Shown here: in pieces, positions 1,777 through 24,255 of the stretch
Numbering within the stretch: the first letter of the stretch is position 1
How the letters are laid out: each line of letters starts with the position of its first letter
Assembly: GCF_006345805.1 (NCBI RefSeq)
Contig: NW_021836324.1
Location: 1-24,694, forward strand
Direction: 5' to 3'
Length of the DNA stretch: 24,694 bases
Source of the DNA: Octopus sinensis
Taxonomy: Eukaryota
Made by a program: the position numbers and the translations under genes
Notes under the pieces: model-generated
Databases searched by the model: none
Told to the model about the DNA's origin: nothing
What the model saw: the letters and a program-made list of their open reading frames with translations, nothing else

Positions 1777-1944
1777 GGAATCATTTGCAAAGACTGCGAA
1801 GAAGTGGTCAGTTTAAGACCATCAACATGTACCAGTGCCATTTGTCATCAGTGCCATACTACAAGAATTGAAAGACGGGAAACTATTTTGGAAATATTCC
1901 AAACGGAATTGAATTATGGACGTGACTTGAAGATTCTATTAGTG
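1777..1944 (+). CDS. RhoGEF exon A (Cys-rich motif + DH helix 1): [56 protein letters not shown]
   Basis: Acceptor ttttcttcttttgcAG (1775-1776); donor GTaagg (1945); phase 0/0; DH CR1 motif E..TE.NY..DL. Confidence 0.93.
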
Positions 1945-2369: not shown

Positions 2370-3371
2370 TCACACACGCATATACATATATATGTAAGTA
2401 TATGTAAGGCGTCTATCTTCGTGTTGTATCTTTAGAACGAAATGTGCATTTCCTTACTACTTTCCCTATACATTTCCACGTGTAGCTTCTACTTTCATTT
2501 TGTAACATATTTCTATTATATCTATATATCTATATATATATAGGCATAACCCAATGGGCATAAAACGTTGCCCTAAAATTATAAATATGACTAACCGACT
2601 TTGTCAAAAACAATGAGACTGAAGACTGATAAGTCATATACTCTTCTTTCTCAAGTATTACCTATTAATTTACTGTTTCACCGGCCGGCAACACTTAAGT
2701 TACAGGCTGGGTTGTCCTTTATGTTCTATCAATTCTCCTTCGCCAAGTATTGATTATGCGAGGCACTTTATTGAACTGTAGCAAACAACCGTTTCCAACA
2801 CGTGCTTTTTTACTGTTGAATAAATATAACCTCACACATCCTACAGTAAAGACTTGTTTTCACTTTGAGTGGACATTTGCTCTACTCCCAATGGAAACGA
2901 GTTTACTGAGTTACCAAACGATTCTACTTCGCTGTATTTATTTATCACATTATATAAGTTGTCTGTTTGTCCAGGCAATTCCTACCTGCTCTCAATATAT
3001 CTAGATGACTGTATGCTCTATCTATCTAGTAATAGTACACACATTAAATGTGACTTAGTTTCCTTCAGTTTAGACCCCGCCTCTCCTAATCATATATCTC
3101 TTTAACCAATTCTCTTTATTATCTATTTCTCAGGAATTCTATGGTCCAATCAAAGAAGCTGGTCTTATCAATAACCAACAACTGACAGAATTGTTTTTGA
3201 ACTTGGAAGAGCTGGTGGACGTTAACGAGAACTTCATTGAACAGTTGAACCGTGTCTTGAACAGTTCACCTCTCCATAATGATAAGGTAAGAACAACATT
3301 TTATTACATCACATCTCTTGCTCTTTCTCTTTCTCTCACGCTCCTAACACTCACTTTATATACATACATAC

Positions 3372-3435: not shown

Positions 3436-6400
3436 GCGTGCTTACATATGTTTGTGTATATACATATGTAGGGGTAGCTGTGGGCGTAGATGTGTGATGG
3501 CGCATGGCTTATATATATATATTATTTTCTGCTCTATCTCCTATATTGGTTTAGTTCAGTGTGCCATGTGCCAGTATCAACATTTTACTGTTATAACCTA
3601 CTGTTAAAATACAGTATTCCACAGACTCCTACTTCAAGGAAAGTTAAATATTGGTCGCAGAATACCTTAAGATGTAGTAGAATTTTTTGCACTTAAGTTT
3701 GGAGTAAATTCTGGGTGCAAAACGCAGTGCAGTGGGACAAAAATATTGTTTATCTTTACAACTGTATTTGCGAGAAAAACATTCACTAGCTTCAATGATT
3801 ATATTTTCCCAGTTTATTCTATCAATTTAGAACACGCTTAACGACATATATTACATGCTAATGTTGTTCTTTTCAATAAATTTATGTTATCGTCTGCTCT
3901 ATTTTACAGGAGGTCGACTGTGTTAATATTGGTCAATTGTTCCAAGAATCAATCCATATGTTCAAAGCCTTTGAAAAATATTGCGTCAAACAGGTTGGTA
4001 ATCTCCATTTCCTTCTTTTTCCTTCTTTTTTTTTCACTTTTACATTCTAACGTTCTATCTCCATCTTTTTCTTTGTCTTCACTCTTACACTATATCGGTC
4101 TATCTCTCTTTCTGTCTATCTCACTCTTACACCGTTTCTGTCTTTTCTACTCCATCACTATATCCTATATTTCATTCCCATATTAGATCTATCACTATTA
4201 GATCTCCTTCCCACACTACATCTGTCTGTCTATCCCCTTCCCACACTATTTCTGTCTATCTCACTCCCACACTTTATTCGTTCAGTTCCCACCACCACCA
4301 CCTACGCTAGATCTCTTTGTCTCTATCCTTCCCACATTTAATATATTCACTTCTTTCCCATACTACATCTGTCTGTCCATCTCCGTCCCACACTATTTCA
4401 ATCTATCTCACTTCCCACACTATATCTGTCTATCTTCCTCCCACACAATCATCCTGTCTCCTTCCCACATCATACCTCTCTATTTCCATCTATTTTGTTA
4501 TCACATATCAATTCTCTACACCTCTCTCTCTCCCTCTCTCTCTCTCCCTCTCTCTCTCTCTCACAGACAGACGCATACTATCACCACACTACCACCACTA
4601 CCCTTCAACTACATTCTCCACTTCCGTATTTTCTCTACCATTTCAACACAGTGTAATATTTTTTAAACCCTTTTATTTCGCCAGAGTGACGCCATGGACC
4701 TACTAGAGAAATTAGAGACAGAGAATGACATTCTGCGAGCGTTCCTGCAAGTAACACAGGCTGAGAACACCACAGTTCGTCGCATGAGTCTAAAGTCATT
4801 CCTTATGGTTCCTGTTCAAAGAGTTATGAAGTAAGTAAATTGATATGACAAACTACTTATAAACTGGGGGTTCATTTTGATTTTGATCGTTCCGGGTTTT
4901 ATAAAATAGCAACCAGTTATACGTCTGAGAAAATGAGTAAGAAAGTAAAGTAAAGGGTTATTTAAATCTTATCTGTATAACTCTAACGAAATAGAGATTA
5001 ACTACTTAGACCCTTGGTTTCTTTTGACTTTTAGAAACATTAATTAATAAAATAAAGTTAATTGCTTAAGTTCCCTGCTCCATCGATAGATGCTGTCGTT
5101 AAAAAAAAACTTGATTATGAATTTCTGATTAATGAGTTTTTTCTTTTTTCTCCTCACCAGGTATCCTTTATTGTTGAATCGATTGTACAAGTCAACCCCT
5201 CAGCACCACCGGGATTCAATTCCGCTTCACGAATCATTAGTTGGCTTAGAACGAATTTTGGAAGAGATTAATGCTGTAAGTAATTCTTCATCTCTCCATC
5301 GCTGATTTTACATTTATTTTTTTATAATTCTTTTTTTTTTTTTTCAAAATTAAGATAAACACAAAGTTCTTTTTTTTTAATCTAAAATATACTCTCCTTC
5401 ATTTTCTACAATGCTCTTTCATCTATCTGGTAGACTTCCAAGGCCCCTCTTCCAATATTCACTTATCCAGTACTGTTCTGACCTCGTCTACAGAATTCAT
5501 ATTTTTTACCGTCCAAATGATTTTGAAGACTACGAAATAAATTATAATCAGATGGGGCAATGTCTGGTGAATATGGTGGGTGGAACATCGTTTCCTATTC
5601 AAACTGTTCCAGCCTTTAAAATGTCATCCGCGCTGAATGTGGCCGAACATTTTCCTGATGGAAGAACACCTTTCATCTTGAAACCAATGATAGTCGTTTC
5701 TCTCCTAGCACTGACTTAAGCCGCTCAAGCTGCTTGCAGTAGATCGCTTTTGTTATCGTTTGGTTTGGGTTTAGAAGTTCAAAGTGGACTAAACCTTTCA
5801 TAACCCGCCAAACAGGTGGGTGAAGACTTTCTTTATCCTGGGGTGCCGGTGATATTCCTTTCGCTATCCACTGTCTTCAGCGCTTGACATTTTTATAGGG
5901 AACCCATTTCTTGTCACCAGTCTCTATTCGGTCCAAAAAAGGTCCATTCGTGAGACTTGACAGCAAAGAAGAGCATACTTTTACTCTTTGTATGCGATTA
6001 CTACCTGCTTTTATAGCAAGTTGATGCAGGTAGTTTATCCCGTCCCCCTCCGACTTTTAGTTCATGCAATTGAAAAAACCGCATTATTTATGGGATAACC
6101 CAATATTTTACGAGCATGAAACTTAGTACACTTCCTTTCTCTATTTTTCTCATTTTCTATATCCGTGTATTTATTTTTGTTTCTGTCTCATATATTTCAG
6201 AAAATCCAAGGAACTAATACTCTGCGATTAACTCGCAAACGGTCGGAGCTCAGACGACACAGTTCTTCTGACAAGTTCGAGCTCATCAAGGTAAAAATCA
6301 TTCTGACTTTCTCAAATTTCTATAGTGACAAATACTTTGCTGCTCTTTAACGATTACGTTTGTAACATTGTATATTGTCATAGTCTCTCTCAGCTTAAAG

Positions 6401-9043
6401 TAACACATTCTCTATGTCATCACCATGACACACGCTTGTATGTTCTACTGTAACACAGCCCACTTGCTCTCTCATACATTATGATATTAATACTCGATTG
6501 CAATATATTCCATATTGTTACAATATGATACAGAAGCTATTGCTCTGTAAAAACTCTGGTTATATTATGTCAGCCTTTGATAAACTAGTATCAATGTCCT
6601 CATGGTTTTATGGTGACATATGCCCAGCTATTCAACAAAGGGACGGATTTTAATTGTTCTGGGGTATAAAATGTCCTATTGCTCTATAATGTATTGGAGT
6701 TTGTATTATTCTACAGACGTTTTTAGTCTGTTATGACACAAATACGTGAGTGCCTGTATGAGTCTACATGCATACAGCAAAAAAGGATCAAAGGTCCTTT
6801 CCGAGCTGTAGGCCCATAAGGCCGATTTTCTGAATTCTGTGTCGTACATATTATACAAACACCCTCCTGGACGGGACGCCAGTCCGGTGAATGGTTACTC
6901 ACTTTTGCCGGCTGAGTGGACTGGAACAGCGTGAATTGAAATGCTTTGCTCAAGAACACAATGCATTGACCAGCCCAGGAATTGAAACCACAATCTTACA
7001 ATCATAAGTGCATTGCCCTTAACCATTAAACCACACGCCTTCACAAGTTTCCTTGTGTTTTAATAAATGTATGATCGTTGTCACGTTCCTGAATATAAGT
7101 TTCCTGTGAAGGTTCCCAACTTTTGCTTAGAACTAATAACATCCGTTGTGTAAAGCCTAGGCATTTGGTTCAAATAGTATACTTTGTGTAGGTTTTATAA
7201 GTATAATTAGATTTATGTTTTGTATATTAACAGCGCATATGAACAACACTTTAATGTATTTCCCCTTTTTTTCTTCGTGCTTTCAGACTGCTCTCGGTCA
7301 TTTGAATTGGAGCCAAGAGGAGATTCATGACATACTGGTCAGTTCTTTATTGACCACTCAGCCACAAGATCATTTTTGGACTGGGAAAAAAGTCAGCAAC
7401 TTAAAGTTTTCTCAGATACACGCTGTCCTTTTAACACGTGGAGAGGTATGTATTATTTAACACTTGAGATGGATCTACATGTTTTTATTAGATTGTCTGC
7501 GTGTCTGTGGAAGTTTGTTATTCATCAAAAATGAGAGAAATGATTGGTTTACCTAAAGCTTTTTATAACAATATAGGCAGTACCTTTTACATGACACGGA
7601 GCTATGTTTAATAGATGTCCTACTAAACAAAAAGTGTGAGATTGGCAGAATCGGTACAGCGGCGAAAAATGTTTTCTTGTATTTTTCTCCCCAAAACTTG
7701 CCGTGGTCTACTTTGCCTTTTATGCTTCCGGGGTCATTAACATAAGTACCATTAGAGTACTGTACACTTTCCAGAAAATTCATGAGTTTTTACCCATGGA
7801 TACGATTGGTGATCTCCGTTTTATTGCAAGCCAGGCAAATTCCCGATTTTAGGATGCTTCATCGCTTCCATCAGTTTCGGGAGCCTTGAGATCAAAAAAA
7901 ATTTTAGTTAGTTTAGAAGACACTTTTACTTTTTGAACTTTATCATTGAAACAATCAATTTGTGACCTTTAAAAATATATTATAAATATGTTGTTCTCTT
8001 CCTTTCAGCCTCAGCCAAAAAGTAGCATTACTAAGAAGCTGCTTTTTACTCAGCAGTCTCCCATTCAACAAGCAGCCTTGGTCACCCTTCGCTGCAAAGG
8101 CAGTAGATACCAACTAGTCAGGGTAAGTTTTCATCATGTGACTTTCTAGATTGTTAATAGGCTTTTACGGGGGTCATGTTATTTAAAGGCATCAACAGTT
8201 TCTTCAGGGCGGAACATAAAATGACACACGCATAAGGAGGTCTCTTTACTTCTTATGAATAGTAGCTAAATTTCACTCAATTAAAACGATATAGGAAATA
8301 TAGGAAGGACTCCTCGTTACAAAATTTAATCTTAGATATCTCTTAAAAAGGTGGGATTGTCATAGCTAGAATAGTTTTGATCACAGGTTTCTCGGGTCAG
8401 GACTGATCTGATGCTAAGACGCGCAGATGAACAGCAACACTACACGCATACATATGTAATGCAGTTTGTTCAAAAACTTTGATTAACTAAGCTTATCCAT
8501 GAAATTAGTACACAAAAACTCCCTCGAGATGATTCTTTATATCAGATACATTAGCTGTATACGCACGCACAGACAGACAGACATACAGACAGACAGACAG
8601 ACAGACAGATAGATAGACTGGTAAACAACCAGCCCAGCCAGAGAACGGAATCTGTACACGGACTGGGTTCTTACTTGAGCTCTTTAACATGCTTTCCAAA
8701 CTTCCGATTATTGGGCACAGTCCTAACCAAGAAGATGGGAATCTGACTTGCTTCGGTATCGTACTCAAAAGCGGTGTCTCCGATTTATAGTATATCAATA
8801 GATGTTGGGGTGAACAGATAAAGGAGTAGTAGGATAGAATTGTGTATGAGTGAAATGTTGAGTATTTCAGAAGTTTTAATTTTATTTTGTTTATATTTTC
8901 TTTCAGGAACCCCTGTTTTTGGACAAATGTGTCATAACTTTAAATTCAGAATTGTCTGAAAATATATTTGAGGTCCAAGATTGGAATAAAGAAACTTACT
9001 TGTTTAAGGTAAATATCACTCTATCTATCAATCTATCTACATA

Positions 9044-10046: not shown

Positions 10047-10375
10047 TTATATATATATTTATATATATATGTATATATATATATATGTATATATATGTAT
10101 ATGTATATATATATGTATATATATATGAGAGAGAGAGAGAGAGACATAGGTAGACGGGTAGATTGTAAAATTTAGCTTCTTTATTGCATAAATTATCTAT
10201 GATTGATTCGTTTCTTACTTGATGTCTAAATTTGACTTCTTTGTATTTACAGGGAGAAGACGACAAAGAAACCAAACGATGGGTTGAACACTTGAAGAGA
10301 TTGAGTCGAAACCTTGGTGTGTTTTGGAGGCGTCGAAACGCCCTCCCAGACATTAATAGCAACAGCAAAGGATAG
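1777..10375 (+). CDS. PsGEF: 5'-incomplete spliced CDS of a Dbl-family DH-PH RhoGEF, probable PsGEF (protostome-specific GEF) ortholog; join(1777..1944,3134..3286,3910..3993,4685..4830,5161..5275,6201..6290,7287..7445,8009..8122,8907..9008,10253..10375)
   Basis: Seen: ten exons with AG/GT boundaries join into a 1254-nt open frame ending at TAG 10373-10375. DH hallmarks are [28 protein letters not shown] and [25 protein letters not shown]; a PH-like C-terminal helix follows ([12 protein letters not shown]). The RhoGEF call is secure. The PsGEF orthology rests on recalled similarity to arthropod PsGEF and needs reciprocal BLAST or a phylogeny. Confidence 0.8.
1995..2447. repeat. ~450-bp near-perfect inverted repeat (palindrome) in the intron after exon A
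   Basis: Left arm GCACATTTTCGTTCTAAAGATACAACACGAAGATAGACGCCTTACATATACTTACA... is the reverse complement of the right arm ending ...CTTTAGAACGAAATGTGC (2447). Inner markers GCGCCCGCGTGTG / CACACGCGGGCGC also pair. The stem closes at 2226/2231 around a 4-nt loop. Confidence 0.95.
3134..3286 (+). CDS. RhoGEF exon B: [51 protein letters not shown]
   Basis: Acceptor atttctcAG (3132-3133); donor GTaaga (3287); 153 nt; DH motif LF.NLEEL..VN..F. Confidence 0.95.
3360..3435. repeat. (TACA)n tetranucleotide repeat
   Basis: Direct reading. Confidence 0.9.
3910..3993 (+). CDS. RhoGEF exon C: [28 protein letters not shown]
   Basis: Acceptor ttttacAG (3908-3909); donor GTtggt (3994); 84 nt; DH motif IG.LF.......F..YC. 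Confidence 0.93.
4195..4480. repeat. Degenerate ~27-bp minisatellite, consensus about TCTGTCTATCTCACTTCCCACACTA
   Basis: TCCCACACTA-like cores recur about nine times, separated by TCTGTCTATCTC-like linkers. Confidence 0.75.
4685..4830 (+). CDS. RhoGEF exon D: [48 protein letters not shown](K)
   Basis: Acceptor ttttatttcgccAG (4683-4684); donor GTaagt (4831); ends in phase 2; DH CR3 motif L.SFL..PVQR. Confidence 0.95.
5161..5275 (+). CDS. RhoGEF exon E: (K)[38 protein letters not shown]
   Basis: Acceptor ttttctcctcaccAG (5159-5160); donor GTaagt (5276); completes the AA|G Lys codon; YPLLL..L.K.TP motif. Confidence 0.95.
5377..6105 (-). mobile_element. Internally deleted, decayed mariner (Tc1/mariner DD34D) element in the intron between exons E and F
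   Basis: Minus-strand translation of 5999->5377: ..[80 protein letters not shown]. It has at least four stops and a frameshift. One TIR TTGGGTTATCCCATAAATAATGCGGTTTTTTC (minus strand, ends at 6103) is followed by TA at 6104-6105. The other TIR and the N-terminal HTH region were not found. Confidence 0.93.
6201..6290 (+). CDS. RhoGEF exon F (basic DH-PH linker): [30 protein letters not shown]
   Basis: Acceptor tatatttcAG (6199-6200); donor GTaaaa (6291); 90 nt; phase 0/0 and frame-consistent. Confidence 0.85.
6779..7044 (-). mobile_element. tRNA-derived SINE (type B) with a CTTGAGCAA...CCAGTCCACTCAGC central core
   Basis: Minus strand: tRNA-like head GGCGTGTGGTTTAATGGTTAAG...GGTTTCAATTCC (A/B boxes), then a 65-bp core shared with 24103-24167, then GACTGGCGTCCCGTCCAGG. 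The core resembles Deu/V-type SINE domains, but the family was not assigned. Confidence 0.75.
7287..7445 (+). CDS. RhoGEF exon G (PH region): [53 protein letters not shown]
   Basis: Long polypyrimidine tract then tttcAG (7285-7286); donor GTatgt (7446); 159 nt open. Confidence 0.88.
7636..7762 (+). mobile_element. Old, deleted copy of the type C SINE seen at 21080-21307
   Basis: GTGAGATTGGCAGAA...GCCGTGGTCTACTTTGCCTTTTATGCTTCCGGGGTCATTAACATAAGTACCA aligns by eye with GTGAGCTGGCAGAA...GCCGAGGTCGACTTTGCCGTTCATCCTTTCGGGGTCGATAAATTAAGTACCA. Confidence 0.65.
8009..8122 (+). CDS. RhoGEF exon H (PH region): [38 protein letters not shown]
   Basis: Acceptor ttctcttcctttcAG (8007-8008); donor GTaagt (8123); 114 nt open. 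Confidence 0.87.
8907..9008 (+). CDS. RhoGEF exon I (PH region): [34 protein letters not shown]
   Basis: Acceptor ttttctttcAG (8905-8906); donor GTaaat (9009); 102 nt; beta-strand pattern FEV...E.YLFK. Confidence 0.9.
9908..10145. repeat. Complex (TA)n/(TG)n/(GA)n microsatellite in the last intron
   Basis: Direct reading. Confidence 0.92.
10253..10375 (+). CDS. RhoGEF terminal coding exon J: [40 protein letters not shown]
   Basis: Acceptor ttctttgtatttacAG (10251-10252); PH C-terminal helix with conserved Trp; stop TAG 10373-10375. Confidence 0.9.
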
Positions 10376-18007: not shown

Positions 18008-18337
18008 TGTACTTGTATAGAGCTAAGCAAGCAAAAGTTTTCTCGTGTGTCCGGAAATTTTTGAGACTGAAGTCAAATCAGTATATGCTCTTGAAGCAGC
18101 TCTACGAGGTGCCCTTGCATATCACAGTAGCTACCCAAGGTTATTATCATTCCCAGATGTACACTTCAAGTAGCAAATCTGGTCCAAATTTCCATAAATA
18201 TGCCAGAAATGACATTTTCTTTCTTCATCAAACAGGAACGTGTCTGTTCGTACATTGCTTTGACTCGCTTTTGCGAATATCAGTGAGAATATCTAGTGCC
18301 AGCCAATTCAGACGCAACAGATCACGTTACCAAATCA

Positions 18338-18785
18338 TTACTCTTTTACTCTTTTACTCTTTTACTCTTTTACTTGTTTCAGTCATTTGACTGCGGCCAT
18401 GCTGGAGCACCGCCTTTAGTCGAGCAAATCGACCCCGGGACTTATTCTTTGTAAGCCCAGTACTTATTCCATCGTCTCTTTGGCCGAACCGCTTATGTGA
18501 CGGGGACGTAAACACACCAGCATCGGTTGTCAAGCAATGCTGGGGGGACAAACACACACACACCACACACACACAAACACACACCACATAACACACACAT
18601 ATATATACATATATACGACAGGCTTCTTTCAGTTTCCGTCTACCAAATCCACTCACAAGGCATTGGTCGGCCGGGGGGCTATAGCAGAAGACACTTGCCC
18701 AAGGTGCCATGCCACGCAGTGGGACTGAACCCGGAACCATGTGGTTGGTTAGCAAGCTACTTACCACACAGCCACTCCTGCGCCT
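18338..18785 (-). mobile_element. Full-length tRNA-derived SINE (type A, CORE-like centre)
   Basis: Minus strand: A box TGGCTGTGTGG (18764-18774), B box GGTTCAGTCCC (18721-18731), CCTTGGGCAAGTG CORE-like motif, internal (GT)n tract and (AGTAAAAG)n tail. Octopus tRNA-derived SINE families (OK/OR1/OR2) are known; exact assignment needs an alignment. Confidence 0.88.
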
Positions 18786-19284: not shown

Positions 19285-19455
19285 AATTCATCATTGGTAG
19301 TACACAGTATTATGAAGGTTGTGTGTGAAGGTGAGAATGACCGTGCTAATATTTTTATAAGTTTCCATAATTTTTATTACCCAGAACATTTGCATTTACG
19401 TATATACAACAATAAAACAATATACATGAGAGGGTGAATGTGATAATTAAAAGTT

Positions 19456-19880
19456 TTTATTCTTTACTCTTTTACTTTTTTACTTGTTTCAGTCATTTGA
19501 CTGCGGCCATGCTGGAGCACCGCCTTTAATCGAGCAACTCGACCCCGGGACTTATTCTTTTGTAAGCCCAGTACTTATTCTATCGGTCTCTTTTTGCCGA
19601 ACCGCTAAGTAACAGGGACATAAACACACCAGCATCGGTTGTCAAGCAATGCTAGGGCGACAAACACGGACACACAAACACACACACACATACATATACA
19701 TATATGTACATATATACGACAGGCTTCTTTCAGTTTCCGTCTACCAAATCCACTCACAAGGCTTTGGTTGGCCCGAGGCTATAGTAGAAGACACTTGCCC
19801 CAGGTACCACGCAGTGGGACTGAACCCGGAACCATGTGGTTGGTAAACAAGCTACTTACCACACAGCCACTCCTGTGCCT
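19456..19880 (-). mobile_element. Full-length type A SINE
   Basis: High similarity by eye to 18338-18785 across head, core, body and tail. Confidence 0.88.
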
Positions 19881-22975: not shown

Positions 22976-23280
22976 ATTCTTTTATTCTTTTATTCTTTTA
23001 CTTGTTTCAGTCGCTTAACTGCGGCCATGCTGGAGCATCGCCTTAATGGGTTTTAGGCGCAGAAATCGACCCCAGGACTTATTCTTTGTAAGCCTAGTTC
23101 TTATTTTATCGGTCTCTTTTGCCGACCCGTTAAGTTACGGGGACAAACACACATGCAGACACACACACACATACACAATCGGCGGGCTTCTTTCAGTTTC
23201 CGTCAGCCAAATCTACTCACAAAGTACTACACAGTGGAACTAAACCCGTAAACATGTGGTTGGGAAGCAAACTGCGCCTA
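22976..23280 (-). mobile_element. Type A SINE with several internal deletions
   Basis: Tail, 3' body and B-box region are present, but the CORE-like block (GGCTATAG...CACTTGCCCAAG), a body block and most of the A box are missing relative to 19456-19880. Confidence 0.8.
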
Positions 23281-23517
23281 TTGTGTGTGTGTGTGTGTGT
23301 GTGTGTGTATCTTAGGGCTTAGAAGTTAGATATTTAGATATTTAGGCCGGTCCAATAACCTGTTACACCGAAGACTTAATTCTATGGCAATTAACAGACT
23401 GAGCAACATAGGCACACTTATCATAAATAACGACAAGTAGAAAACCATAATCTTGAAGATATCGCGTTTTGGTTCATGGCAGAATCCTAAGATAAGAGAA
23501 TTGGGATTAGGTATTTT

Positions 23518-23788
23518 GTGAGGGATCACCGTGTATAGGCTCTTAATGTCGAGAGTGAAGATAAGTTTAGAGGGTCCAGGAGGGAAGGAGAAAGAGTTGA
23601 ACAAATGAAGGACATGGTTGGTGTCATGGATGTGAGAGGAGAGGGAAGCCACTAGGGGCAAAGAAACGGTCAAGACATCTGGAGATGAGTTCGGTGGGGC
23701 AGTTGCAGGCGGAGACAATGGGGCGGCTAGGCTTGTGGATTTGGGGAGGAAGTAAATTGTGGGGGTGCGAGGGGTGCGGACAATGAGG
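23518..23788 (-). mobile_element. Penelope-like element (PLE) reverse-transcriptase fragment
   Basis: Minus strand, with two small frameshifts: LIVRTPRTPTIYFLPK(I)HKPSRPIVSACNCPTELISRCLDRFFAP/LVASLSSHIHDTNHVLHLFNSFSFPPGPSKLIFTLDIKSLYTVIPH. This contains the PLE RT motifs LPKIHK, RPIVS and D..SLYT.IPH. Confidence 0.88.
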
Positions 23789-23914
23789 ACAACATAGGCA
23801 CATTTACCATAAATAACGGCGAGTAGAAAACCATAATCTTGAAGACATCGCGCTTTGGTTCATTGCAGAATCCTAAGATAAAAGAATTGAGATTAGGTAT
23901 TTTGTGAGGGATCA

Positions 23915-24167
23915 AGAAGGAGCACTCCGTCGGTTACGACGACGAGGGTCCCAGCTGATACGATCAACGGAACAGCTTGCTCGTGGAATTAACGTGCAAG
24001 TGACTGAGCAATCCACAGACACGAGTACCCTTAACGTAGTTCTCAGGGAGATTCAGTGTGACACAGAGTGTGACAAGGCCGGCCCTTTGAAATACAGGTA
24101 CAACTCATTTTTGCCAGCTGAGTGGACTGGAGCAACGTGAAATAAAGTGTCTTGCTCAAGGACACAA
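23915..24167 (-). mobile_element. 5'-truncated SINE (type B core, different 3' body) inserted into the duplicated PLE fragment
   Basis: Starts at TTGTGTCCTTGAGCAAGACAC...CCAGTCCACTCAGCTGGCAAAAATGAGT. It splits the sequence GATCA^CCGTG, which is contiguous in copy 1 (23524-23533). No clear TSD. Confidence 0.8.
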
Positions 24168-24255
24168 CCGTGTATAGGCTCTTGATGTCGAGAGTGAAGA
24201 GAAGTTTAGAGGGTCCACATACTCGAAATTAACGTTACTGTGTGCATACACACAC

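Follow-up and report, generated by a model that had tools for sequence, protein, structure and literature searches.

What is the role of a PKA inhibitor-like motif at the very end of a guanine nucleotide exchange factor for Rho? The question is raised by a 24,694-nucleotide stretch of Octopus sinensis DNA (contig NW_021836324.1, positions 1 to 24,694, forward strand; assembly GCF_006345805.1), here called the window, which is AT-rich (34% G+C), carries abundant TA and CA microsatellites, and is clearly eukaryotic. A preliminary description of this DNA had proposed that a RhoGEF encoded in the window ends, right after the C-terminal helix of its PH domain, in a motif resembling that of PKI, an inhibitor of PKA's catalytic subunit (PKA-C). 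Our analysis of the locus and its relatives places the gene in a bilaterian family of exchange factors, reveals a near-invariant motif at the C-terminus of that family, and points to the tail as a candidate pseudosubstrate of PKA-C.

The motif itself can be read directly from the DNA. Positions 10325-10354 of the plus strand are TGG AGG CGT CGA AAC GCC CTC CCA GAC ATT, followed by codons for NSNSKG and the stop codon TAG (10373-10375). By direct translation, and counting from the would-be phosphorylation site (P0), the motif consists of Arg at P-3 (10331-10333; R404 of the protein encoded in the window), Arg at P-2 (10334-10336; R405), Asn at P-1 (10337-10339), Ala at P0 (10340-10342; Ala407, 10 residues from the protein end) and Leu at P+1 (10343-10345), all on the plus strand. 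The pattern RRx[AG]-hydrophobic occurs once in the three frames of the window's plus strand, at this site. Translation, the gene model and the structure prediction described below agree that the motif lies where the preliminary description had put it, a few residues past the PH C-terminal helix.

The gene model, assembled with spider, crinoid and other relatives as guides, comprises ten plus-strand exons with AG/GT at all borders and a single open frame of 417 residues that encodes a DH-PH module and runs to the stop; the window begins downstream of the portion that codes for the N-terminus. The terminal exon 10 (10253-10375, plus strand) encodes the PH C-terminal helix, the tail and the TAG. 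It has a polypyrimidine tract and AG in front of it, connects in phase 0 to the nine exons upstream, and in tblastn searches matches spider and crinoid orthologs, aligning to their PH C-terminal helix and tail. A mis-called terminal exon is ruled out by the splice borders, the frame and the homology across exon 10. Many short metagenomic gene calls stop at '...FIFK' followed by V (e.g., VS), and we read these ends as read-through of an intron positioned as the exon 9/10 border.

Is the motif a property of the octopus protein or of its family? Relatives were collected with a profile that spans the PH domain and the tail. Run against 1.84 billion representative proteins, it yielded 312 relatives at E<=0.001 and 72 at E<=1e-30; an earlier homology search with a spliced DH query had produced just 4 matches. 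Tails were extracted by HMMER alignment to the profile, with the motif itself not used, giving 89 distinct tails from insects, chelicerates, crustaceans, molluscs, a bryozoan, a crinoid, a hemichordate, amphioxus, lamprey, fish, frog and a marsupial. The window tail aligns with the RR-x-A/G-hydrophobic block of these 89 tails. Arg occupies P-3 in all 89 and P-2 in 87, the two exceptions being orthologs P0053 and P0081, which end '...WRKRH' and continue with unrelated residues; their 3' ends may have been predicted wrongly, or they may represent alternative isoforms lacking the pseudosubstrate core. P-1 is free, with Asn in 70 tails and otherwise Gly, Ser, Lys, His, Arg, Phe, Thr, Tyr or Gln (ten residue types). 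P0 is Ala in 70 and Gly in 17 tails, and Ser, Thr, Cys and Val never appear among the 89. P+1 is hydrophobic in 85 of 89 (Leu 73, Met 7, Val 3, Phe 2), P+2 is Ala or Pro, P+3 is Asn in 84 and Asp in 3, and P+4 is Ile in 82. On the other side of the arginines, P-4 is mixed (Lys 37, Arg 35, also Gln, His, Thr, Ser, Ala, Cys or Leu), P-5 is basic (Arg 74, Lys 11), P-6 is Trp in 84 of 89, P-8 is Gly in 86 and P-9 Leu in 75; at P-11 Lys or Gln is most frequent, and P-20, within the PH helix, is Trp in every tail. The family consensus is LG-x-W-[R/K]-x-R-R-x-[A/G]-hydrophobic-x-N-I-M-hydrophobic, with RRNAL[A/P]NIM[I/L] as its core form, and the protein ends 8-13 residues past P0 in 88 of 105 motif-bearing tails.

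The two arginines are also conspicuous in the context of the whole protein: in a 30-species alignment of DH, PH and tail, R404 and R405 are among the 28 of 417 positions that are invariant, the others lying mostly in the DH core. The preliminary description had set retention of the motif in orthologs as a test in advance, and the core is retained in essentially every ortholog, in protostomes and deuterostomes alike. A chance origin of the motif was considered and is ruled out by the numbers, since the ortholog tails contain RRx[AG]-hydrophobic 104 times, compared with 15 times elsewhere in the same 118,295 residues, where 15.8 occurrences are expected from composition. Because the motif is conserved across orthologs, a functionless coincidence is excluded.

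The manner in which the tails vary is as informative as their conservation. As we read the variants, Ala has been exchanged for Gly at P0 in at least seven lineages, and in none for Ser or Thr. Exchange between Ala and Ser is common in evolution, and the observed pattern fits a selective pressure against phosphorylation better than one for small size alone. In the most drifted lineages, differing flanks have been lost and the core retained. The hydrophobic N-I-M-I is gone from the window tail, which reads PDINSNSKG, the bryozoan one lacks the Trp along with two basic residues (GGRKQMRRGALSNILL; GGRKQMRRGALSNILLHT), the tail of ortholog P0140 reads HHQHRRHAVPNLI, and other drifted tails include RRNATHNLML, RRSALPNFLL and RRHAVPNLI. 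On this comparison, the PKI-beta-like 'PDI' of the window is a peculiarity of its lineage.

Sequence identity indicates that the gene is the ortholog of Drosophila GEF64C (RhoGEF64C), which in vertebrates goes under the names arhgef49 or si:dkey-91i10.2. The window protein shares 46-47% identity over ~410 residues (E ~1e-120) with its closest members, molluscan proteins of the GEF64C type, and 38-42% with dipteran (fly) members. Named members of the family include 'rho guanine nucleotide exchange factor at 64C' from Musca, 'arhgef49' from the teleost Aplochiton and si:dkey-91i10.2 from the sawfish Pristis, and members without a gene name were found in Xenopus, a caecilian, a marsupial, lampreys, amphioxus, a hemichordate, a crinoid, a horseshoe crab, shrimp, gastropods, bivalves and a bryozoan. 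This spread agrees with the distribution reported by Fort and Blangy (2017), who found GEF64C in protostomes and deuterostomes, including non-placental vertebrates, and its loss in placentals and nematodes (PMC5499878). The window protein also has the feature by which the family is recognized, a DH-PH module at the extreme C-terminus that ends in LG-x-W-basic-RR-x-A/G-hydrophobic. The preliminary description had implied another gene name, PsGEF, and in this respect it was wrong: identity to Lottia PsGEF is 21% over 214 residues (E=2.8e-9) and confined to the DH domain, and the published PsGEF sequences (Higuchi et al., PMC2684095 supplement) contain neither the RRNA motif nor a tail of this kind. 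PsGEF, a protostome-specific GEF, has C2 and PDZ domains on the N-terminal side of its DH domain, and the corresponding region of the present gene falls outside the window.

The fly protein provides the functional frame for the family. Bashaw et al. (2001) described GEF64C, a DH-PH protein of the Dbl type, as an exchange factor for RhoA that promotes axon attraction to the fly midline (PMC2199320); within the family, exchange on RhoA is reported for the fly protein only. One of the three ethyl methanesulfonate-induced alleles that abolish its gain-of-function effect is a missense change at the COOH-terminal end (PMC2199320); the altered residue is shown in a figure only.

The window protein is a Dbl-family RhoGEF with a DH-PH tandem. 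Its DH domain is recognized by Pfam RhoGEF (PF00621; residues 37-221, E=2.2e-39, threshold 27.6 bits) and matches intersectin, NET1 and ARHGEF11 among PDB sequences (E ~1e-20 to 1e-17). The Pfam models for the PH domain stay below threshold (PH_13, 25.2 bits vs 27), and a weak PH domain score has likewise been reported for fly GEF64C (PMC2199320). In the AlphaFold2 (AF2) model, the PH domain follows directly on the DH domain and is formed by beta strands and a C-terminal helix; a Foldseek search with this model retrieves solved DH/PH tandems, including those of p115-RhoGEF, PDZ-RhoGEF, Vav1 and Dbs, over ~390-400 columns at E ~1e-15. We modeled the window protein and a fly-type ortholog with a canonical tail as monomers, each built on 20-30 sequences, and obtained a mean predicted local distance difference test (pLDDT) score of 84 and 80, respectively, with the DH-PH module confident in both. 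The tails behave differently from the domains. In the window protein a helix (381-398) is followed by a strand (400-403, VFWR) and then by residues 405-417 with pLDDT <50; in the fly-type ortholog pLDDT is <50 for tail residues 406-425, with a short helix at 405-409. These low values are consistent with a flexible tail, low confidence being no proof of disorder. In a clade of orthologs (P0044, P0046, P0049, P0052, P0059, P0062, P0063, P0065, P0069 and P0074), the PH domain is interrupted ahead of its last strands by several hundred inserted residues of low complexity; these proteins keep the tail end W-R-x-R-R-x-[A/G]-[L/F]-A-N-I-M-M-M despite the split PH domain.

How close is the resemblance to known PKA inhibitors? 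The preliminary description had claimed an identity of 8 consecutive residues, RRNALPDI, between PKI-beta and the window tail. The PKI-beta sequence used for the comparison matched human PKIB with identity and coverage both at 100%, so the identity is real and that claim stands. PKI-alpha, as present in PDB entry 3wyg_D, reads RRNAIHDILV where the family reads RRNALANIMI, and the likeness therefore extends to P+3 to P+6. Given the shared R-R-N-A-hydrophobic-x-D/N-I-hydrophobic pattern, PKI and the GEF64C tail might be of common descent. Membership in the PKI family itself was considered and rejected, on the grounds of a sub-threshold Pfam score, the lack of PKI's N-terminal helix and of its P-11 Phe and P-6 Arg, and the position of the motif at the end of a large multidomain protein. 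A search of PDB sequences with the 40-residue tail returned no PKI peptide, its matches being at chance level only (a small heat-shock protein and one subunit of photosystem I).

A broader standard of comparison is provided by the work of Eccles et al. (2016), who formulated R-R-X-S/(A/G)-hydrophobic as the consensus for PKAC substrates and inhibitors, common to all R subunits and PKIs (PMC5059767), and through it found the pseudosubstrate RRGAV of ARHGAP36 (PMC5059767). The ortholog pattern R-R-x-(A/G)-hydrophobic is this consensus, and the substitutions seen among the tails are those predicted for a PKA pseudosubstrate. Several sequence hallmarks of the PKI motif of Smoothened are likewise found in the family: the P-site is occupied by Ala, P-2 and P-3 by Arg and P+1 by a hydrophobic residue, and a helix lies upstream. 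The upstream aromatic on that list, present at P-13 in Smoothened and at P-11 in PKI, is not matched at either position.

We propose the following model. A tail that is strongly conserved and is not predicted to pack on the domains is typical of a linear motif that binds a partner, and a pseudosubstrate for PKA-C is the most likely function of the tail, a judgment that we hold tentatively and with a little less than even confidence. We infer every step that involves the kinase, taking the sequence, gene model, orthology, conservation and low-confidence tail described above as the observed basis. The two arginines would dock in the acidic P-3 and P-2 pockets of PKA-C, the Ala or Gly at the phospho-acceptor site would escape phosphorylation, and the Leu would fill the P+1 pocket. 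Free PKA-C would thereby be held on the exchange factor and locally blocked, as it is by PKI, the RI subunits, ARHGAP36 and Smoothened. Alternatively, the tail could position the kinase to phosphorylate RRxS sites in the DH-PH linker of the same protein. The fuller statement, that GEF64C/arhgef49 is an ancient bilaterian RhoA exchange factor with a true PKI-like tail, capturing and silencing free PKA-C where the exchange factor acts, is possible and at present rather doubtful.

The linker sites deserve mention in this connection. The preliminary description had listed PKA-type sites at 6234-6263, and these are indeed present as the basophilic-kinase consensus sites RKRS and RRHS in exon 6 (6201-6290, plus strand), which encodes the DH-PH linker. 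RRx[S/T] occurs in the linker of 17 of the 30 aligned orthologs, in forms that differ between groups: arthropods have WRRIS together with RR[A/L/P]S, a gastropod has RKRS..RRYS, and vertebrates have FRR[E/D]S. Linker residues 231-241 have pLDDT <50 in the AF2 model and are predicted to be flexible. Such sites fit a protein that is handled by a basophilic kinase.

Several observations weigh against PKA-C as the partner. R-R-x-A-hydrophobic also suits other basophilic kinases. The residues that give PKI its high affinity, Phe at P-11 and Arg at P-6, are absent, the family having Trp at P-6; for the window tail this had been anticipated by the preliminary description, and its residues at these positions are indeed Arg (P-11) and Phe (P-6). 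The Pfam PKI model (PF02827) scores the window tail at 14.4 bits (E=0.048), below its threshold of 25, aligning tail residues 27-39 to model positions 18-30; it finds nothing in 8 canonical family tails, and only two 'PDI' tails score. The conserved block, which takes in the Trp and N-I-M-hydrophobic, measures ~16 residues and so exceeds a minimal PKA pseudosubstrate in length, and therefore another partner, or a contact that the AF2 monomer models missed, is possible. Finally, no link between RhoGEF64C and PKA (Pka-C1) was found in the searched literature, with most subscription journals outside its scope. The same literature contained no motif string (including KRRNAL) and no pseudosubstrate in a Dbl-family GEF, RRRNAL appearing in two unrelated papers only; the combination of pseudosubstrate, PKA catalytic subunit and RhoGEF led only to work that by title and abstract seems unrelated, as did the name 'arhgef49'. 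Given the journals outside the search, this absence is suggestive and falls short of proof.

What else could account for such a tail? It could be a structural or regulatory element of the exchange factor itself, a basic and hydrophobic segment (Trp, four basic residues, then L..IMI) which binds acidic membrane lipids beside a weak PH domain or autoinhibits the DH-PH module, with no kinase involved. The position of the block directly after the PH C-terminal helix, its amphipathic character and its length beyond a kinase consensus (Trp at P-6 in 84 of 89 tails, basic P-5, Asn at P+3, I/M/I at P+4 to P+6) would all suit this role, as would the short strand 400-403 predicted for the window protein and the short helix 405-409 of the fly-type ortholog. 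The weak Pfam score of the PH domain makes an extra membrane anchor plausible, and the C-terminal missense allele that eliminates the fly gain-of-function fits any essential role of the tail. Yet pLDDT is <50 for the tail in both models, a membrane anchor would not fix a pattern in which P-1 is free and P0 limited, and packing of a small residue normally tolerates Ser, whereas P0 is only Ala or Gly. Moreover, the window has lost IMI and the bryozoan the Trp, and both retain RR-x-A-L. We regard an element of this kind as unlikely but a serious rival, while giving it more weight than a docking site for a different kinase.

The same conservation pattern would serve a pseudosubstrate or docking site for another basophilic kinase, such as PKG or PKC, or one of the Rho-effector kinases ROCK, PKN and PAK, in which case the exchange factor would be tied into a feedback loop with its own product. 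Arg at P-3 and P-2 is common to several AGC and CAMK kinases, PKC pseudosubstrates read R-K-G-A-L, and the tail lacks Phe at P-11 and Arg at P-6, by which PKI is selective for PKA. Set against this are the best literal matches, which are PKA inhibitors (RRNAL[P/A][D/N]I in the family, RRNALPDI in PKI-beta, RRNAIHDI in PKI-alpha), the minority forms RRGAL and RRGG-, which match the inhibitor sites of RI-alpha and RI-beta, and the lack of the basic residues that PKC prefers at P+2/P+3; we think a kinase other than PKA distinctly improbable as the partner, if by no means far-fetched. The idea that the R/K-R/K-R-R cluster is a nuclear localization signal or generic basic patch, with a coincidental likeness to PKI, draws on the four consecutive basic residues of most orthologs and on a chance expectation for RRNA-hydrophobic-x-[D/N]-I of ~0.2 per 10-million-residue proteome, so that one coincidence would not be impossible. 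It leaves the Ala or Gly at P0, the hydrophobic P+1 and the N-I at P+3/P+4 unexplained, and P-4 is often non-basic (Q, H, T, S, A, C or L), with only RR retained in the tail of the bryozoan and those related to it; we give it very little credence.

What would follow if the tail is indeed a PKA-C pseudosubstrate? PKA and Rho signaling are antagonistic in cell shape, migration and growth-cone steering, and the known physical links between them are few: AKAP-Lbc through the R subunit and ARHGAP36 through its pseudosubstrate. The GEF64C tail would be the third embedded pseudosubstrate after those of ARHGAP36 and Smoothened, the first in an exchange factor and, occurring in distant bilaterian phyla from bryozoans to marsupials, apparently the most widely distributed. 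Where Rho is activated, it would act on PKA as a direct brake that does not depend on cAMP. Such a brake could explain how a Rho exchange factor attracts axons in flies, and it could bear on the switching between axon attraction and repulsion by the level of cAMP and PKA. The motif would also offer a mutable handle on a poorly understood exchange factor in Drosophila, zebrafish and Xenopus. Should the tail not bind PKA, a near-invariant C-terminal motif would be left without an explanation, and its strict conservation would still argue for functional importance.

The remainder of the gene and of the window can be described briefly. The DH region is encoded on the plus strand by exons 1 to 5 (1777-1944, 3134-3286, 3910-3993, 4685-4830 and 5161-5275), all with AG..GT borders and in one frame, exon 1 beginning with a Cys-rich stretch (CxxC...CxxC). 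The PH domain starts in exon 7 (7287-7445, plus strand; ...AVLLTRGE) and continues in exon 8 (8009-8122, plus strand; PQPKSS...), which has AG..GT borders, is in frame and matches by eye the ortholog stretch ...ATLLLVKEKNGRYSLAR, and in exon 9 (8907-9008, plus strand), which encodes PH beta strands, is likewise bordered by AG..GT and in frame, and matches orthologs in tblastn searches. The Cys-rich stretch, C-x2-C ... C-x2-C (ICKDCEE...AICHQCH), lies immediately before the DH domain in the window (1777-1860) and in orthologs; its second Cys pair is near-invariant in the 30-species alignment, and AF2 predicts two short beta hairpin-like strands. This stretch might be a small zinc-binding element.

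Mobile elements probably account for other features. Intron 5 of the gene contains, on the minus strand at 5463-6056, the remnant of a mariner-type DNA transposon: 5676-5876 (minus) matches Pfam Transposase_1 (PF01359, E=1.6e-11), and the open pieces at 5463-5623 and 5880-6056 (minus), which do not score alone, resemble the same broken transposase. Elsewhere in the window, three copies of a short interspersed repeat with the frame '...LLLFYLFQSFDCGHAGAPPL...' lie on the plus strand at ~18287-18451, 19451-19609 and 22990-23050, each adjoining a CA/TG microsatellite; this is probably an element of the genome that resembles short interspersed nuclear elements. Two long open stretches on the minus strand, 23329-23859 and 24046-24228, have a common peptide ('LIFTLDIKSLYTV' / 'LLFTLDIKSLYTV'), and their sequences suggest two copies of a decayed retroelement; neither has a Pfam family at E<=0.1.

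How does the GEF64C tail relate to established ways of controlling PKA-C? With PKI it shares the R-R-N-A-[I/L/V] core, in which the non-phosphorylatable Ala takes the P-site, followed by Asp or Asn at position P+3 and by Ile at P+4; unlike PKI, a small free inhibitor with an N-terminal helix and a nuclear export signal, it is the tail of a large DH-PH exchange factor. The inhibitor sites of the RI subunits read RRRRGAI and RRRRGGV. Their run of Arg (P-5 to P-2), then Gly or Asn, Ala or Gly, and a hydrophobic residue, is closely similar to the family variants RRRRGALPNIM and RRRRGGQANIM. In contrast to RI, the GEF64C family has no cAMP-binding domains, and therefore cAMP would not be what drives any release of the kinase. 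AKAP13/AKAP-Lbc offers a different parallel, being a Dbl-family RhoA exchange factor that is physically coupled to PKA, and its DH/PH structure (4d0n) is among the fold matches of the window protein. AKAP-Lbc anchors the holoenzyme through an RII-binding amphipathic helix and is not known to bind PKA-C through a pseudosubstrate.

The nearest relatives in design are the two pseudosubstrates embedded in larger proteins. ARHGAP36 is known from vertebrates only. Like GEF64C, it is a regulator of the Rho GTPase cycle with an R-R-x-A-hydrophobic decoy outside the catalytic domain (PMC5059767). It differs in belonging to the RhoGAP family, in the N-terminal position of its motif, and in its proven binding and delivery of PKA-C to lysosomal degradation, whereas the tail described here is a C-terminal candidate motif on a GEF from distant bilaterian phyla. 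Smoothened, too, carries its pseudosubstrate within the cytoplasmic tail of a signaling protein (Happ/Arveseth et al.; bioRxiv 10.1101/2021.07.05.451193). Its motif has an aromatic at P-13, requires phosphorylation by GRK and binds with an affinity of ~0.8 micromolar (bioRxiv 10.1101/2021.07.05.451193); in GEF64C the upstream helix is the last helix of the PH domain, and the nearest aromatic is at P-6 (at P-5 and P-6 in the window). On these sequence comparisons, the tail of GEF64C/arhgef49 is best filed as a new candidate in the known class of embedded PKA-C pseudosubstrates.

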